Assembly (NCBI GenBank): GCA_023334545.1
Contig: JAADVB010000067.1
Coordinates: 13,690-77,689 of the forward strand
Length of the DNA stretch: 64,000 nucleotides
Source of the DNA: Salisapilia sapeloensis CBS 127946
Lineage: Eukaryota; Protista; Oomycota
Direction of reading: 5' to 3'
Position 1 is the stretch's first letter. Each line of letters opens with the position of its first letter. Below the pieces are notes generated by a model that saw nothing but the letters and a program-made list of their open reading frames with translations, did no database searches and was not told the origin of the DNA. Of the stretch, positions 7,948 to 16,500 are shown piece by piece. Both the position numbers and the translations under genes were made by a program.

Positions 7948-10532
7948 ATGGATTATAGCGCTGGTCGACGCTCGTTTGGTGCATCGAGCACGAATAACTT
8001 CCCTACAACTAGTACAGGCAATGACTCTCAAGCCACTAGTGTGAATAACGGCGGTGGAAACACTGGACAGTCAGATTATGCCGAAGAAAGAGGTACGAAG
8101 CGTCTGCTTATGGACTAATTTCGATATACAACTCACTCCGGGCTTTGTCTAATAGAAAAATGTATCGACTTCCTAAGTACTTTTCAGTCCAGTCTAGACG
8201 ATCCGAATGACCAGCCAAAGTATCTTCGGATGATGGTAGACTCTTGTACATGTCAATAATTATATACACTCCAACCTGTTCATTGCGACGTAGCAAGAAG
8301 TCGCGAATCGAGAACGCATTGCCATTCCAATCGAACTGGATGATCTCCAAAATGTAAGACTTCTCCGTTTTTTATATACACCAATAACGTATGAAAATGA
8401 TATGTTCGTCCTAGCATGTCACGGATCCAGAATTTGTCCATCGAATTGCTCGAAACGCAAAGCGTTACATTGAGCTATTTTCCGAAGCTATCGACCGCAA
8501 CCTCCCTGCTCCGACACGTGACATTTCTCATGAGCAGGACGTATTAGACGTCCTTCGCCTCCAACGCGCAGAAGAGATGGCAGAGATGGAACAATCGAAT
8601 AACGGGACCACGAGCCAAACGACTCCAGCCGGGTCTGTCGCCAGCTCTGTCTTCCCTCCTCAACTCATGCGTCGATTCGAAGTGCAGCTCGTTCCGGACG
8701 TAAAAGCCAAGCCCGTACCGATTCGACAAGTCAAAGCAGGTCAAGTCGGACGACTCGTGCGTGTCAAAGGGATGGTCACACGCGTGTCGACAGTCAAGCC
8801 ACTGCTAACCGTCGCAACATACACATGTGAGGCATGTGCATACGAAGTGTATCAGGAAGTCAAGTCGCGGCAGTTCAATCCTGTGACCACCTGTCCAAGT
8901 GAACGCTGCCAGACGAACGGTCTGAGCGGTCGATTGATCCTCCAGCCGAAAGCTTCTAAATTCGACAAATTCCAAGAAGTTAAACTGCAGGAACTTCCGG
9001 ATCAAGTTCCGATGGGTCACATCCCGCGCTCCCTCTCGGTCGTGTTAAGAGGTGAGTTAACGAGATCCTGTGAGCCGGGTGCGTTGATCACCCTCGCCGG
9101 TGTCTTTTTACCTGTCCCTACGTCTGCCCAGCGACAGATGATGCTCGGTCTCGTGACAGAGACGTATTTAGAAGCAACGCACGTGATTAATCATAAGAAA
9201 CGATATGCTGCGATGGAATCGAGTGAAGAGATGGAAGACGCGGTCCTGACACTCCAGAGCCAAGGAAATGTCTATGAAACGTTATCTCAGTCCCTTGCAC
9301 CAGAGATCTTTGGCCATGAAGATATCAAAAAAGCGTTGCTACTGTTATTAATCGGTGGTGTCACGAAACGCATGGATGAAGGCATGACTGTGCGAGGCGA
9401 CTTGAACGTCTTGCTCATGGGTGACCCAGGTGTCGCCAAGTCCCAGCTACTGAAACACATCGCGACCATTGCACCTCGTGGCGTCTACACGACTGGTAAA
9501 GGAAGTTCCGGCGTCGGTCTCACAGCGGCGGTGGTGCGGGATACAACGACGAGAGAGATGACGCTGGAAGGTGGCGCACTCGTCTTGGCTGATCGAGGAG
9601 TCTGCTGCATCGATGAGTTCGACAAGATGGAGGACGGTGACCGGACGGCTATCCACGAGGTCATGGAGCAACAGACCGTCAGTATCGCCAAGGCAGGAAT
9701 TACCACGACGTTAAACGCACGCACGAGTGTCTTGGCTGCTGCGAATCCGCTCTACGGACGCTACAACAAGCGTCTATCAGCGTCGACCAACATCAATCTT
9801 CCGAATGCCTTGCTTTCTCGATTCGATCTCCTGTTCCTTCTCTTGGACGTTGCCAATTATGAGCAGGATGAAGCTCTCGCAAGACACGTCACGTACGTCC
9901 ATCGTTATGCACGAAACCCACCGATGCAAGTGACACCTGTTCCGGCTGAAGTACTCCGATACTTCATCGCCATTGCAAAGCAGTATGAACCTAGTGTCCC
10001 GGAGCACTTGTGTGGGTACATTGTCGAGGCATACGTGACGCTTCGACAGCAAGACGTACATGACCAGAGACGTCAGAACGGGAATAAGAAGAACTTTGGG
10101 AAGAGTCAAGAAGATGTGAATCAAGCGCAGACAGCCATGACCGCTCGACAGTTGCTCAGTATCTTGCGACTGTCCCAGGCGTTGGCGAGACTTCGATTCG
10201 CGACGGAAGTCGTGCATCAGGATGTGGATGAAGCGATTCGACTCGTGTATGTTTCCAAGAACTCCTTGTCGGATCCAGAGGATGGAAATGGAGGATCAGG
10301 AGATGCTGTCCGGAGTCGAAGTGGAGCAGACGCAACGTCCAGAATCTATCGTCTCGTGCTGGAATTTGCTGAAGACCATCGGACGAGGTCCATTCCGTTG
10401 AATGATGTCGAGCCAGCAGTCTTGCGGAAAGGATTTACACAGCAGCAACTACGCGAGTGTATTCGATTCTATGAACGACTGGAAGTCATGCAGCTGAATG
10501 CTACGGGGACTACACTCAACTTGATCGATTAA
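7948..10532 (+). CDS. MCM7: DNA replication licensing factor MCM7, 800 aa, 4 exons
   Basis: join(7948..8092,8156..8235,8294..8353,8415..10532), 2403 nt in frame. Zn finger CEAC..CPSERC, Walker A GDPGVAKSQ, Walker B CCIDEFDK, arginine finger SRFD. MCM7-type IELDDL and TARQLLSILRLS. Confidence 0.95.
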
Positions 10533-10738: not shown

Positions 10739-11251
10739 TTATCGGAACCAGAGCTTTAGACGGAAGGCATCGTTTCCGTTCAAGTAATACCGGAACAACC
10801 GTTCGTCTCGAACGAATCCCAAATTCTCGTACAGCCGAATGGCCCCCTTATTGGACGTCTCGGTCTCCAACGACACTTCTTCGCATCCTTCGGTATGATA
10901 CAAAAGCTCGACTGCCTTGCGCACGAGATCGGAGCCGATGCCTCGCTGTCGGAATTTGTTGTCCACTGCTAGCATCGCAATGTACCCTCTCATCTTGCCT
11001 TTCGAGTCCGCAGCATCATTCTTCCCCGTCGGTTCGTGCTCCCCTCGTGCCAACGGTTCCAATCTGCAGACGATTGCACCAATCAGTTTGTTTTTCACGC
11101 GTGCCAAGACACATAGTTCCGGCCAATTGAAGAGAAAGTATCGATACGTAAACACCGAGTACGGTTCCGACAAATCTTTATCAATAAGTTTCACGAGCTC
11201 TGGCAGTTCATGCTCGCCATGATACGCCCCAAAGTCGACCGGATCATCCAT
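10739..11251 (-). CDS. NAA30: N-terminal acetyltransferase NatC catalytic subunit (Mak3/Naa30), 170 aa
   Basis: [28 protein letters not shown] acetyl-CoA motif, [29 protein letters not shown]. Confidence 0.93.
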
Positions 11252-11499
11252 ATTTGCTGATCCACTCGCGTGCCATCTGCGTCAAAAGTCCTCTTCTCGC
11301 AACGTCCGACCATTGCGAAATCAGAGCTTTAGCCAATCGCCAGTCGATTTTCGCAACTTCAATTACAGGCATACAAAGACCAAGTCAATTGCATCCTAGG
11401 CAGTTTGGCTGGACGAGAGCTCTCCGGTCTCTTGATCCGCCACGCATCCGTGCCCAGCCATTCCCCATCTTGCCTTCTAGCGCAGAAAAGTTAAAGAAA

Positions 11500-13860
11500 A
11501 TGGCCCCGAAACGTCGTTCTCGCAAGTCCACGAAGGACCCGCACGCCGCGCTATCGACGGATGAACGTGCCAAGCTCGGTGCGGAAGCCAAGGAGCGTGG
11601 TAACACGGCCTTCGCCTCCGGCGACCACGCCACGGCCATCAAGGAGTTCTCTTCTGCCATTGCCTATGAGCCGAAGAACGTTATCTACTACTCCAACCGA
11701 TCGGCCGCTTACTTGAGCGCCGGACAGGCCACGCCTGCCCTCCAGGACGCCAAGACCTGTATCGAGATCGACCCTAAGTTCGCTAAGGGCCATGCCCGTC
11801 TCGGTGCCGCCCACTACTACGTCAAGAACTACAGCAAGGCCGTCCAGGCCTACACGCAGGGTCTGACCGCCGAGAAGGGTAACAAGGCCCTCCAGACCGG
11901 TCTGACGCAGGCACAGGCTGCGCTCCAGGTGCAAGAAGAGGAAATCTCGGGCGTTGAGATGGACGAAGCCACGCGCAAGATGAAGCGTATGGAGATCGAG
12001 GAGAAGATCAACGCTGCCCGCAAGGAGCGTGAGGAGCGTGCCAAGCGCGCTGAGAAGGGATTCTCTGAGGTCATTGGTATCGATCTTGGTACGACCTACT
12101 CGTGTGTTGGTGTCTGGAAGGAAGGACAGGTCGAGATCATCGCTAACAGCGAAGGTAACCGTACCACGCCTTCCTGGGTCGCCTTCAACGACTCTGAACG
12201 TTTGATCGGTGAGGCCGCTAAGATCCAGGCTGCTGGTAACCCGGCCAACACGGTCTTCGACGCCAAGCGTATCATCGGTCGTCAGTTCAACGACGAAGTC
12301 GTCAAGAAGGACGCTGCTCACTTCCCGTTCAAGATCGTGGAGGGCGACAGCGACAAGATCCTCATCGAAGTCGAGTTCAAGGGCGAGAACAAGCGCTTCA
12401 CGCCGGAAGAAATCTCCTCCATGGTCCTTACCCGTATGAAGGAGACCGCCGAGGCCTACTTGGGCCAGAACATCGGCCAGGCCGTCGTCACGGTCCCTGC
12501 TTACTTCAACGACCAGCAGCGTCAGTCCACCAAGGACGCCGGTTCTATCGCTGGCCTTGACGTCAAGCGTATCATTAACGAGCCGACGGCTGCTGCCCTT
12601 GCCTACGGTCTCGACACCAACGCCGGTTCGGACGGTACGGCCTGCAACGTCCTTATCTTCGATCTTGGTGGAGGTACCTTCGATGTGTCCATCCTGTCCA
12701 TCGAGAACGGTATCTTCGAGGTCAAGGCCACTGGTGGTGACACTCACCTCGGTGGTGAGGACTTCGACAACAACGTCGTTGACTTTGTCGTGTCCGAGTT
12801 CAAGCGTAAGAACCGTGGCATGGACCCCACGACCTCGGCTCGTTCCATGCGTCGTCTCCGAACGGCGTGTGAGTCTGCCAAGCGTATGCTTTCCACGACC
12901 ACGAGCGCTTCCATCGAAGTCGACTCGCTCTTCGAGGGTGTTGACTTCTCCACCACGATCACTCGTGCCAAGTTCGAGAGCTTGAACGAGGAGCTCTTCA
13001 AGCGTTGCGAGGAGACCGTCCAGAAGGTCCTGAACGACGCTTCCATGAAGCCGGAGGACGTCTCGGACGTTGTCCTTGTCGGTGGTTCTACCCGTATCCC
13101 CAAGGTCCAGACGCTCCTGTCCACCCAGTTCGGCGGCAAAGAGCTCTCCAAGTCCATCAACCCGGACGAGGCCGTTGCCTACGGTGCTGCCGTCCAGGGT
13201 GCCATCCTCGACGGCATCCGTAACGACGCTACTAACAGCCTCTTGTTGGTCGATGTCACGCCGCTCTCCCTCGGTATCGAGACTGTCGGCAAGGTCATGA
13301 GTGTGCTCATCAAGCGTAACACGGCCATCCCGGTCCGTAAAACGCGTGTGTACACGACGGAAGAGGACTACCAGACGTCTGTCGATGTCTGCATCTACGA
13401 GGGTGAACGTGCCCACGTTGAGCAGAACAACAAGCTCGGAGAGTTCAACATCTCTGGACTTGAACGCGCTCGCCGTGGTGAGCCGCAGATCGAAGTTACG
13501 TTCGAGATCGATGCTAACGGTATCCTCAACGTGTCTGCCCGCGACAAGAAGACGGGTGCCAAGGCCGAGACGACCATCTCGAACAACCGTGGCCGTCTGA
13601 GTCAGGACGAGATCGACCGCATGGTCTCGGACGCTGAGAAGTACCGTAAGGACGACGCTGAGATGCTCCGCCGCATTGAGGCTCGCAACGAGCTTGAGCA
13701 GTTCATCTACCGTGCCATTGAGACCGCCCGTGAGAAGGGTGACACTAACGCTGAGAGCGCTATCCGTGACGCGCGCGACTGGTTGGAGGACCACGAGGAA
13801 GCGACGCTGCGCGAGATTGAGGACAAGAAGCGCATGCTTGAGCGTATGGTGCGTGCCTAA
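11500..13860 (+). CDS. TPR-Hsp70 fusion protein (Hop/Sti1-like 3xTPR plus cytosolic-type Hsp70, no EEVD), 786 aa
   Basis: Single exon from ATG 11500. TPR: [23 protein letters not shown]. Hsp70 signatures [35 protein letters not shown], linker [16 protein letters not shown]-terminus is [11 protein letters not shown]. Confidence 0.93.
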
Positions 13861-14049
13861 ACGAAGCGGAAAGACGATGCGAATGGCGGGTTAGCTTAGG
13901 GATCCCGTCATGAGTTTTTAGTAAACTTAGTACTTATCTTTCTTTTCCACCACAATCAGAAGAGCTTTTTACGTACAATGTTCCATCCGTCTTGTCTTCT
14001 GTTTTAAAGATACTGCATGTAAGTCGTGTGTGCTTAGTGTAGAGGATGG

Positions 14050-16500
14050 CGGAGAGTGGTTGACACAAAAGACTTCACCAGGAGTGGGTCTAGCGCTGTT
14101 GTGCTTATAAGCTGTGTTAGATAGGCGTTTGAAGGTGATGGGGACGAAACGAGCGAGCTGGAGTATTTGTAGGAACGGTCTTAGCTTTGGGCGAAGGGCA
14201 GTGAGATGGATGGATGATCTTTAGACGGACTGGACTGGCAGAGTTGGAAGGTTGTAACTGCGTTATTGATAGCAAGTGCTCGCTTCGGTTTCTTTCAGCA
14301 TGCTTGTTCGGGTACAAAAGGATAAAGACGGGGTTTTCGTGGGCTGATATCGTTCTCTACTTTTAGTCTGACATAGACAAAATGCTGTGCAGCTTGTAGA
14401 CGCCCAAGTCTTTAACATACTCCAAGATCATTCTATCAAACGTATCTTTATAGTAGCGATCGATTTCGTTGTCGGAATATGCCTGATTGGACAGCAAGGT
14501 AATTTAACCGTCCACGTAAGCACGATTTTATGTAGGATACTAGGCAAAGCTCTTGGAGAGAGTTGCGTGATTGTACAGGAAGACACACGGTTACCGACAG
14601 ACATCATGTCGAGCAGTTATTGGCTTTTGCTAGCTTCCTATCGACGTTCCAAACAAAAAAATCAATTGAATTAAAGTAAAATGCGAGTAATAGCGATATA
14701 TTAGCGATCCAAAGGGAGCAAACACTAGTGCAGCGTGTACAAACTGAGATCGGATGTTATGGTTGGTTAAAGCATCCAATTCATACAAAGAGTTGTTAGA
14801 TCTCGATGCGAAATGACTCATGGAAACCTTAAGAGAATCTCTATAAGCCCCTACTTTGATCTGACTTTCGATTGTAAATTCGCGACAGTCACGATCAGCT
14901 TATTCTCTTCGCAACGATCAATCTTCATTCGCTTTTGGTAGTTTAACACGCAAGTATCACTCCACTTCTGCCTCTCCGTCATTCGCAGTTTTAGAATATC
15001 ATGAGATCATGTCTCGTCGAGTTCACTTGACCATCTTTACGCCCAAACATTCTTGGTAACCCCTCCAAATGCAAAAATCTCCTTGTGGGACTATAGAGAC
15101 ATCACAAGTACATTCGCTTTAAACATTTAGTGCTCACGTTTCACGACATGCGATTGCTACTTCGCACACTGCTTGGAGTTGTAGGTGGTGAAGAGCTAAA
15201 GGCCATGCTTTTCAACCACATAGTGAATATGCAGGCTCTTGATGTCGACATGCAGCCCACAATTGACAGAGATTCTATTATTGGAACTTACCCGTGTATC
15301 CAAAGTACAAGCAGGACAAGTGGATCAAGCAGTAGTTTCGTGCATATACGACCAACTCATGCGCTCAGGACGCTGGATGATGCTCGCAGATACAATAGAT
15401 CAATGTGAGCGAAGGATATCAGGTCGCAGCTGCATGTCAAGGGAGATGATTTGGAAAAGAAGACCAAAACGTTCAATGGCAACCTGGAAATTTCACTTCG
15501 AAGACATGTCTGACTATCTATCTGATGTATTCTAAATAGTCTACTCCAGCTGATAAAAGGACGGTCATTCCTGCTACCAACTCTTCGTCTATCAGCTCTC
15601 CAAGTACGCCACTGACGTCCGATATAACAGTGCACTACTGGGCAAAATGCTCGAGAAAGCTCTTCGATAACATGTACTTCAAGTCTGAATGATAATCAGA
15701 CAGGTCGTTCGGTTGTGTATATGTACAAAATGCCATAACGAACCTCAGCCACCGATATTTGTAGATTTGAAAGAGGACCATTCATTTCAGCATTTGATAG
15801 GCAAGGGAAAGAGGATGAAATCTATTGATATTATGCTTCCTGACAAACTGATCTAGTGGTTGCTTTTAAGCTACCATTGGTGAACATGGAGCGAGCAATG
15901 CTACATGAGATTGCTGATTTCCCTACATGGTTTTCGCTCAGTTTATAAATGATGTCAACGTAAGCGAAAGTGCTTCCGTACACCTGTCTATTACGAACTT
16001 GGAAGATAAGAATTAGAAATCGCCGCTTATGCTGGCTAGCTACCAAACATTTACATGCTCTCTTTAAGTCAGGGCAAAATGAGCCGCAAGGAACGCGCAA
16101 GGAAAAGCGTATAGTCCAGCTGGATAGGATATAGTAGTAGGGTCGTATTTTGAGTTGGGGATCCATGACTAGCACGATGTTTCGACAAAGTGAAGGTTAG
16201 GCAGTTAGCTCTCGAGGCCGAGTCCAACTCTACCCGCTCTGCTATGTGCACGCTAGCATTTAAAAGCGACGTCATTTCCATCTTGTTGACATAAACCAAG
16301 TCATGTCAGCCTCCTAATCACCGTTTGTGTCTGGACGACTGATAGGAGTTGGGAAGTTCCTTCGCGTCACCATAATGTAGCCTAGACCTATTGGATAAAC
16401 TTCCGATTTGGTGGTGGAGCGACGCCAGCACATCACATTCAGGATATAGATGTCACCATGTGCTGGAGAAGGATATAGTGAAACGACGAAGAGAGAGCCT
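14050..16500 (-). mobile_element. Heavily decayed non-LTR retrotransposon (LINE ORF2) relic
   Basis: Ordered degenerate motifs in broken minus frames: endonuclease-like IYILNV and SKHRA (16.2-16.5 kb), ISVAEVRYGILYIYTTERPV* (15.7 kb; like ITxxEV..KAPGPDG), IVPQGD (15077-15094; RT QG motif), RHDLMIF (14994-15014; ADD motif). Many stops and frameshifts; boundaries approximate. Confidence 0.45.

Follow-up and report, generated by a model that had tools for sequence, protein, structure and literature searches.

Hsp70 networks are normally wired through separate adaptor proteins that read an EEVD C-terminus. In one of these, Hop/Sti1, the domains TPR1 and TPR2B are described in PMC4403447 and PMC2939883 as sites for Hsp70, and TPR2A as the site for Hsp90. 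EEVD-binding TPR domains share a pattern of K5 and N9 in motif 1, N6 in motif 2, and K2 and R6 in motif 3, and single clamp TPRs such as that of CHIP take Hsp70 and Hsp90 tails alike (PMC2939883). On the other side of this interaction, canonical cytosolic Hsp70s carry a Gly/Pro-rich tail with EEVD at its end, while the fungal ribosome-associated Ssb1 (PDB 7OLC), an Hsp70 of cytosolic type, lacks EEVD and stops directly behind the lid. Adaptors that join one clamp TPR domain to an effector include CHIP, PP5, SGT and RPAP3/SPAG1, the effector being a ligase, a phosphatase, a J-domain or the like; DNAJC7/TPR2 is another clamp-TPR co-chaperone with a module of the Hsp70/Hsp90 cycle.

The gene described here lies in a window of 64,000 nucleotides from the oomycete Salisapilia sapeloensis. 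It joins such a reader to a full Hsp70, and in all 69 members of the family to which it belongs the Hsp70's own tail has been removed.

The gene and its transcription

The ORF listing gives an intron-less open frame at 11254-13860 on the plus strand, whose first ATG lies at 11500 and whose stop codon ends at 13860, to yield a protein of 786 amino acids. All full-length orthologues begin at the same start (MAPKRR...). The features of the locus are as follows.

11252..11499, no strand: intergenic region of 248 bp, head-to-head with an NAA30-like acetyltransferase gene (ORF layout)
11500..13860, +: full TPR-Hsp70 coding sequence, 786 codons and stop, 0 introns
11500..11556, +: K/R-rich disordered tail, aa 1-19 (pLDDT 39 at aa 1-10)
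11557..11871, +: three-repeat TPR domain, aa 20-124 (Pfam; aligned with TPR1 and TPR2B of human Hop)
11590-11592, 11602-11604, 11695-11697, 11785-11787 and 11797-11799, +: clamp codons for K31, N35, N66, K96 and R100, respectively (Hop TPR1 alignment)
11884..11946, +: capping (seventh) TPR helix, aa 129-149 (AlphaFold2; aligns to the C-terminal helix of Hop TPR1)
11965..12057, +: E/K/R-rich charged linker helix from TPR to NBD, aa 156-186 (AlphaFold2, pLDDT 67-84)
12070..13224, +: Hsp70 NBD, aa 191-575 (PF00012; GIDLGTT and DLGGGTFD motifs invariant)
13258..13584, +: SBD beta domain, aa 587-695, with the interdomain linker just upstream (clade-specific changes conservative only)
13603..13857, +: complete helical lid, aa 702-786, with helices at 702-714, 716-746, 749-764 and 770-785 (AlphaFold2)
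13861..13955, +: approximate 3' UTR (high-depth contig ends at 13941 in run X1 and 13955 in X4)

Transcript-like contigs were taken from four 15-Mb runs (X1-X4), whose RNA nature is a guess. Contigs of all four runs span 11519-12685 and 12657-13955 without a joint, and in doing so cross the boundary between the TPR and Hsp70 parts at 11930-12070, where the preliminary description had sought proof of a single transcript. Contig depth in these presumed-RNA runs is 99-2081 over the gene, against 0-51 (mostly below 20) downstream; past the contig ends at 13941 and 13955 it drops from the hundreds or thousands to about 2-50. Upstream, contigs of X1-X3 read through 11252..11499, while those of X4 end at 11177 and resume at 11519. 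The frame is uninterrupted, as had been claimed, with neither a stop nor a change of frame, and the codon bias noted previously as extreme is confirmed by an effective codon number (Nc) of 33.7 and a GC3 of 0.75; MCM7 and NAA30 have Nc values of 53.5 and 46.6, respectively. The bias is equally strong in the TPR half and in the Hsp70 half. Codon bias and contig depth are both in keeping with the high expression suggested earlier. The TPR-Hsp70 fusion is a real oomycete gene and, by these signs, strongly expressed and transcribed as a single unit.

The NAA30-like gene, at 10739-11251 on the minus strand, diverges from the fusion gene, whose promoter and 5' UTR are presumably contained in 11252..11499. 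No heat-shock element TTCnnGAAnnTTC was found in this interval in either register, with up to one mismatch allowed. An antisense ORF of 747 amino acids at 11551-13794 (minus strand) was considered and rejected as a by-product of codon bias, the sense counts of TTA, CTA and TCA being 0, 1 and 0, respectively.

The TPR clamp and the Hsp70 engine

In the AlphaFold2 model (mean pLDDT 86, pTM 0.63) residues 1-11 are disordered, seven TPR-type helices occupy residues 20-149, and a long charged helix at 156-186 leads into the first strand of the NBD at 191. Pfam TPR_1, TPR_2 and TPR_11 match across residues 28-125. After the K/R-rich tail, column counts in the family alignment show conservation of the motif D-x-[YHF]-A-x-[LV]-S. 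The linker of the Salisapilia protein has an E+K+R fraction of 0.54; across the family its median length is 39 aa (range 9-66) and its E/K/R fraction 0.46. The basic N-terminal patch, the three TPRs and the acidic/basic helical linker of the preliminary description are all recovered in this way. Of the 65 complete family members, 61 have a K/R-rich segment at the N- and/or C-terminus, which hints at a nuclear or polyanion-targeting role.

The TPR domain shares with Hop/Sti1 TPR1 (PDB 1ELW; 7KW7 chain E) its three repeats, its capping helix and its clamp: K31, N35, N66, K96 and R100 align with Hop K8, N12, N43, K73 and R77, giving the K5N9-N6-K2R6 pattern of a clamp TPR. The earlier claim that all five equivalents are present thus holds, and these residues are invariant in 67-69 of the 69 fusions. 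Such conservation shows selection for an acidic C-terminal ligand; the identity of that ligand is not given by it. In a profile comparison that covered the Hop domains, TPR1 scored 127 bits, TPR2B 99-109 and TPR2A 53, and TPR1 was the best profile for 69/69 fusions; the clamp families SGT, PP5, RPAP3 and SPAG1 have similar scores in the PDB search. By these scores the fusion TPR is specifically Hop-TPR1-like, the type that would bind an Hsp70 tail. Because single clamp TPRs of the CHIP type accept both tails, this likeness amounts to a mere lean towards Hsp70.

The fusion has a single TPR domain, without DP/STI1, TPR2A or TPR2B, and shows no match to PF17830, which true Hops (540-600 aa) carry; its TPR is held covalently on an Hsp70, whereas Hop bridges two chaperones. 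The plan of one clamp TPR domain joined to an effector is that of the clamp-TPR co-chaperones, and CHIP and PP5 also have a long helix after the TPR, with alignments extending to fusion residues 178-183; but here the effector is an entire Hsp70.

That the Hsp70 part has complete NBD and SBD, as claimed, is borne out by HSP70 PF00012, which matches residues 191-784 (E 6.7e-232; 771.4 bits, where the cut-off is 20.6) over positions 1-590 of 599. Neither the nucleotide-site motifs nor DVTPLSLG vary in the family alignment, and the AlphaFold2 model contains an NBD, a beta-sandwich and a lid of four helices. The Hsp70 engine keeps all the family-invariant motifs, from the nucleotide site and the interdomain linker to the substrate cleft and the lid. 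Its best PDB matches are human HSPA2 (751 bits) and Hsc70 (743), with HSPA2, Hsc70 and HSP70-1A together at 739-751, BiP at 670 and Ssb1 at 648. These scores assign it to the cytosolic (Hsc70/SSA) type, with BiP and Ssb1 lying lower. Identity to canonical cytosolic Hsp70s (HSPA8, HSPA1A, HSPA2, plant Hsc70) is 61-63% over NBD, linker, SBD and lid, with about six clade-specific substitutions, all conservative; the fusion differs from them in its 190-aa N-terminal extension and in its missing tail.

The ending ...RMVRA without EEVD, reported in the preliminary description, is confirmed, and corresponds to canonical residue ~612-615 of 646, where the helical lid ends. What is absent is the disordered Gly/Pro-rich tail of ~35 residues with its EEVD, plus 2-4 residues deleted within the lid; apart from that small deletion the lid helices are complete, so that the earlier term "shortened lid" does not apply. 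An EEVD-like ending occurs in 0/69 fusions, versus 53/55 canonical cytosolic Hsp70s. Ssb1 ends in the same way, but its score below both Hsc70 and BiP speaks against Ssb-type kinship, and Ssb is fungal and has no TPR.

Distribution and kinship of the fusions

The family set comprises 69 TPR-Hsp70 fusions from oomycetes and other protists, 65 of them complete. Orthologues of 785-789 aa are found in more than ten oomycete genera; fusions of the same length occur in Phytophthora, Pythium, Globisporangium, Albugo, Aphanomyces, Saprolegnia and Thraustotheca, and the Hsp70 part is 82-91% identical across oomycetes. In the ESM Atlas, clusters with this architecture bear the labels Chlorophyta (green algae) and Bacillariophyta (diatoms), which rest on few members. 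The sequence searches made brought up no such fusion from animals, fungi or land plants. Oomycete TPR+Hsp70 models of the kind mentioned in the preliminary description do exist, but the architecture is not confined to oomycetes: it is found in many protists and carries database annotation. As to function, the earlier view that it is uncharacterised stands, in that no study of a natural TPR-Hsp70 fusion was found in the full-text literature; subscription journals lay outside this coverage, and such a study may exist elsewhere.

In a FastTree tree of the Hsp70 parts, built without a BiP or Hsp110 outgroup, one branch with support 100 splits all fusions from 54 canonical Hsp70 sequences, which sets the fusions apart as a group of their own, either inside the cytosolic Hsp70s or next to them. 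Bacterial proteins from Bacteroidota, Thermodesulfobacteriota and Pseudomonadota in the ESM Atlas likewise bear both Pfam families on one chain, but their TPRs are of the TPR_8 and TPR_12 families and they are look-alikes at the level of features (scores 0.77-0.91); the likeness is probably convergent. Kinetoplastid HSP70.a, considered as a possible TPR-bearing Hsp70, was set aside: a Leishmania chaperone review groups it with Grp170 and mentions no TPR.

Probable docking partner and place beside Hop

The reading we favour, with a probability of roughly 0.6, is that the protein is an abundant, probably constitutive, cytosolic-type Hsp70 paralogue whose Hop-TPR1-type clamp docks on the EEVD C-terminus of another chaperone. 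The most probable partner would be canonical Hsc70, with its IEEVD-type tail, and Hsp90 (MEEVD) a less probable one. Docking would set a second ATP-driven Hsp70 beside the partner, leading to joint handling or hand-over of clients in mixed chaperone assemblies. Because the protein has lost its EEVD, the clamp would stay available, with neither self-capture in cis nor head-to-tail polymerisation, and the protein would escape other EEVD readers such as Hop, CHIP and class B J-proteins. Its K/R-rich terminus would probably localise it to the nucleus or to some other polyanionic site. The fusion would work alongside Hop: because the oomycete Lagenidium giganteum has a canonical Hop (P0341) of 570 aa with an STI1 domain, and several diatoms have Hops too, the idea of a "Hop bypass" in the sense of a replacement is unsupported.

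The partner could instead be Hsp90, its MEEVD held by the TPR so that the Hsp70 loads clients directly without a Hop bridge. The clamp is intact and invariant, and Hsp90 is a ligand of many single clamp TPRs (PMC2939883). The TPR2A profile of the Hsp90 site, however, lies far below both TPR1 and TPR2B, so that an equal standing of Hsp90 as partner is unsupported, and with Hop known from an oomycete and from diatoms a bypass is unneeded; we consider this version unlikely. Somewhat less likely still is that the clamp reads a non-chaperone acidic C-terminus, or acts in cis on the Hsp70 NBD in the manner of Hip, tuning the nucleotide cycle. An engineered Hsp70-NBD/Hip-TPR fusion in the PDB (4j8f) argues that a TPR can act on an NBD, but no Hip chain appears among the 60 best PDB matches for the TPR, where Hop, SGT, PP5 and CHIP are present, and NBD binding would not require all five clamp residues to be invariant. 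Capture of the protein's own tail in cis is unlikely, the C-terminus being basic and not conserved between subfamilies.

An assembly or gene-model chimera of separate TPR and Hsp70 genes is refuted for practical purposes. Nothing was found in its favour; some database models of orthologues are split (P0013 with P0157, Saprolegnia) or truncated (P0004, 631 aa, Bremia). Against it stand the recurrence of the same fusion in seven genera from Phytophthora to Thraustotheca, the contigs of four presumed-RNA runs that cross the junction, the uniform codon bias and the intact frame.

It is tempting to go beyond docking on another chaperone, and to see in the fusions an old, undescribed third class of cytosolic Hsp70, of single origin in the Hsp70 tree, which protists such as oomycetes, diatoms and green algae would have retained and which is missing among the sequences seen from animals, fungi and land plants. 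Such a protein would be an obligate partner of Hsc70, its TPR1-type clamp on the Hsc70 EEVD making a tethered two-motor pair that the K/R-rich tail, at either end, anchors to a polyanionic site, for instance the nucleus, nucleolus or ribosome. Taken as a whole this proposal is doubtful.

The fusions offer a natural experiment on how an Hsp70 cooperates with another Hsp70 or with Hsp90, on why an EEVD and a clamp cannot share one chain, and on what the flexible TPR1 of Hop contributes. The protein is highly conserved and probably abundant in oomycetes, a group with major pathogens of crops and fish. Because animal, fungal and land-plant fusions were not found in the searches made, it represents a lineage-specific part of core proteostasis, and one that is easily tested.

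Gene layout and transcript continuity

The fusion gene lies in a frame that is open without interruption from 11254 to 13860 on the plus strand (ORF listing), and its first ATG, at 11500, is the start shared with all full-length orthologues (MAPKRR...), giving a product of 786 aa. The gene and its neighbours upstream are:

8577-10532, plus strand: MCM7, 651 aa, upstream of the fusion gene
10739-11251, minus strand: NAA30/MAK3-like N-acetyltransferase, 170 aa, between MCM7 and the fusion gene
11500-13860, plus strand: TPR-Hsp70 fusion gene

The NAA30-like gene and the fusion gene are head-to-head, 248 bp apart. No heat-shock element was found in this 248-bp upstream region in either register with at most one mismatch, which suits constitutive expression better than heat induction.

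The orthologue architecture, the joint-free, transcript-like contigs and the uniform codon usage establish a single gene, and together they refute in practice the idea of an assembly or gene-model chimera, to which we attach next to no probability. The same 785-789-aa architecture is found in Phytophthora infestans, P. nicotianae, Pythium, Globisporangium, Albugo, Aphanomyces, Saprolegnia and Thraustotheca (the Bremia database model, at 631 aa, is truncated), and oomycete orthologues are 71-87% identical over the first 200 residues and 82-91% over the Hsp70 part. Four public sequencing runs, each yielding some 15 Mb of contigs, contained 90-97% of the words of the stretch, and the contigs extend over 11519-12685 or more and over 12657-13955, free of joints, insertions and deletions. 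Continuity of the transcript across the TPR/Hsp70 boundary, for which the preliminary description had looked to reads over 11930-12070, is borne out by the contigs over 11519-12685, their RNA nature being guessed. The sole contig break, in all four runs, is at 12656-12686, a 31-letter word common to another abundant contig of about 3.3 kb (depth 296-757), which then runs into different sequence and presumably represents the organism's transcript of a paralogous Hsp70, perhaps a canonical one. Contig depth is 99-2081 within the fusion gene versus 0-51 (mostly below 20) in the ORF-poor stretch downstream, and the high-depth contigs stop 80-95 nt past the stop codon; both observations fit RNA as the guessed run type. 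Contigs of three runs read through the MCM7, NAA30-like and fusion genes, as is expected of a compact genome.

The two halves of the gene are alike in codon usage (Nc 36.6 and GC3 0.77 for the TPR half, 32.8 and 0.75 for the Hsp70 half), and in both the bias is much stronger than in MCM7 (Nc 53.5) or NAA30 (46.6), in agreement with the strong bias first described; there are signs that the gene is highly expressed. An antisense ORF of 747 aa spanning nearly the whole gene (11551-13794, minus strand) was rejected as evidence of a gene: it is a by-product of this bias, because the coding strand nearly avoids the three codons that read as stops on the opposite strand (TTA, CTA and TCA, with 0, 1 and 0 occurrences, respectively). 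Between 13.9 and 16.5 kb all ORFs are at most about 110 aa. A low-depth contig (6.5) leaves out 80 nt at 13998-14079, with ends CT..AC, equivalent to GT..AG on the minus strand, and a shorter flank of just 22 nt; it may stem from splicing of a non-coding or UTR transcript.

Architecture of the family and its Hsp70 moiety

Pfam places TPR_1, TPR_2 and TPR_11 at residues 28-125 and HSP70, matched over its full length (771 bits), at 191-784; no STI1/DP domain was found by Pfam. In an AlphaFold2 model based on an alignment of 76 sequences (mean pLDDT 86.3, pTM 0.63), disordered residues 1-11 are followed by six TPR helices (20-124), a capping helix (129-149) and a long charged helix (156-186) leading directly to the first NBD strand at 191, from which point the protein is modelled as an ordinary Hsp70 made up of an NBD, a beta-sandwich and a lid of four helices (702-785).

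Word searches gathered 69 fusions, defined as proteins that contain a complete Hsp70 and have at least 140 residues ahead of its start motif. None ends in an EEVD-like motif, as against 53 of 55 canonical cytosolic Hsp70s from the same search with EEVD or DEVD, which extends the reported absence of the motif to the whole family. The lid, by contrast, is not shortened as had been supposed: in alignment the fusion ends at about residue 612-615 of a canonical plant Hsp70 (646 aa), at the end of the helical lid, with merely a 2-4-residue deletion, and what is missing is only the Gly/Pro-rich disordered tail bearing EEVD. The last codon in Salisapilia (13855-13857) encodes Ala (...RMVRA); among the other sequences of the oomycete clade the last residue is aromatic or hydrophobic (...R-F, Y, L, V) in 21 of 24, and R or N in three.

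Since only some six columns separate fusions from canonical proteins, all conservatively (I/L, A/G, R/K, T/S, S/T, L/I), the Hsp70 engine looks fully canonical from its sequence. Its nearest solved chains are cytosolic HSPA2, Hsc70 and HSP70-1A (739-751 bits), with BiP (670) and fungal Ssb1 (648) behind. A FastTree phylogeny of 124 sequences, restricted to the Hsp70 part, places 54 canonical proteins on one side of a branch with support 100, and on the other the 69 fusions with P0173; this fast, unrooted tree, built without a BiP outgroup, suggests that the fusion arose once. P0173, a 598-aa JGI metatranscriptome record with neither TPR nor EEVD, sits beside the retrieved record P0164 within the fusion clade, and represents either secondary TPR loss or an internal-start model. 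Five more records (P0149, P0153, P0166, P0167 and P0184) are fusions with a truncated N-terminus.

TPR and NBD are joined by a linker rich in E, K and R (0.54 in Salisapilia; family median 0.46), which varies from 9 to 66 aa (median 39) and resembles a spacer more than a docking surface. Most fusions carry a pre-TPR extension of 30-45 aa with 5-11 K/R among the first 20 residues, and a subclade devoid of it has a K/R-rich C-terminal tail in its place; 61 of 65 complete, non-identical fusions have a K/R-rich segment at one terminus or both (canonical Hsp70s in the same windows: median K/R 2 and 1). Such a basic tail, usable from either end, might be a localisation or polyanion-binding signal.

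The TPR clamp and its predicted ligand

Residues K8, N12, N43, K73 and R77 of human Hop (7KW7 chain E) align with K31, N35, N66, K96 and R100 of the fusion, so the five clamp residues noted initially are indeed present. K31 and N35 occur in 67 of 69 fusions, the two exceptions being N-terminally truncated records, and the other three in all 69. The domain matches K5N9-N6-K2R6, the defining pattern of TPR domains that bind EEVD (PMC2939883).

When the fusion TPRs were scored against TPR1, TPR2A and TPR2B profiles made from about 177 Hop sequences, TPR1 was best for every one of the 69 (median 127 bits, against 99 for TPR2B and 53 for TPR2A). Hop/Sti1 engages Hsp70 through TPR1 and TPR2B and Hsp90 through TPR2A (PMC4403447; PMC2939883). 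Because TPR1 and TPR2B outscore TPR2A, the predicted ligand leans towards the Hsp70 tail. The lean is not settled, since single clamp TPRs like that of CHIP accept both Hsp70 and Hsp90 tails (PMC2939883) and a PDB search gave similar scores for SGT, PP5, RPAP3 and SPAG1.

Hsp90 as partner, envisaged along with Hsp70 in the preliminary description, is unlikely: the low TPR2A score counts against it, as does the presence of Hop itself. A canonical Hop of 570 aa with its STI1 domain occurs in the oomycete Lagenidium giganteum (record P0341), and Hop is found also in several diatoms. The earlier proposal of a Hop bypass, in the sense of Hop replacement, thus finds no support, and the fusion would act alongside Hop. 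More improbable again is a clamp that binds a non-chaperone acidic C-terminus, or a TPR acting on the NBD in the manner of Hip; this reading is weakened by the clamp being invariant at all five positions, and none of the 60 top PDB matches listed for the domain is a Hip chain.

Distribution and proposed role

Fusions with named organisms are all from oomycetes, and more distant ones (49-66% overall identity) come from EukProt, JGI, ENA and Logan records. The family extends well outside the oomycetes, as judged from ESM Atlas clusters with HSP70 and TPR that are labelled Eukaryota/Chlorophyta and Eukaryota/Bacillariophyta and from the placement of a distant fusion, P0124, in the Chlorophyta-labelled cluster (score 0.99), the non-oomycete labels being thin, with few members behind them. 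Bacterial clusters with Hsp70 and TPR (Bacteroidota, Thermodesulfobacteriota, Pseudomonadota and Actinomycetota; 635-805 aa) are probably an independent, unrelated architecture. The sequence family is not new, because automated annotation has already given the gene such database names as "heat shock cognate 70 kDa protein", "Heat shock 70 kDa protein 18" or even "Hsp70-Hsp90 organising protein"; a full-text literature search found no paper describing or testing a natural TPR-Hsp70 fusion, in line with the initial view that the architecture may be known but is functionally uncharacterised.

The clamp probably grips the EEVD tail of another chaperone, more likely canonical Hsc70 than Hsp90, and the docked fusion would add a second Hsp70 motor near that partner and its client. 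Loss of its own EEVD would be the simplest way to spare the clamp capture of its own tail in cis or the formation of head-to-tail chains, and would also withdraw the fusion from Hop, CHIP and class B J-proteins. The fusion would then be a canonical Hsp70 with an EEVD reader built in.
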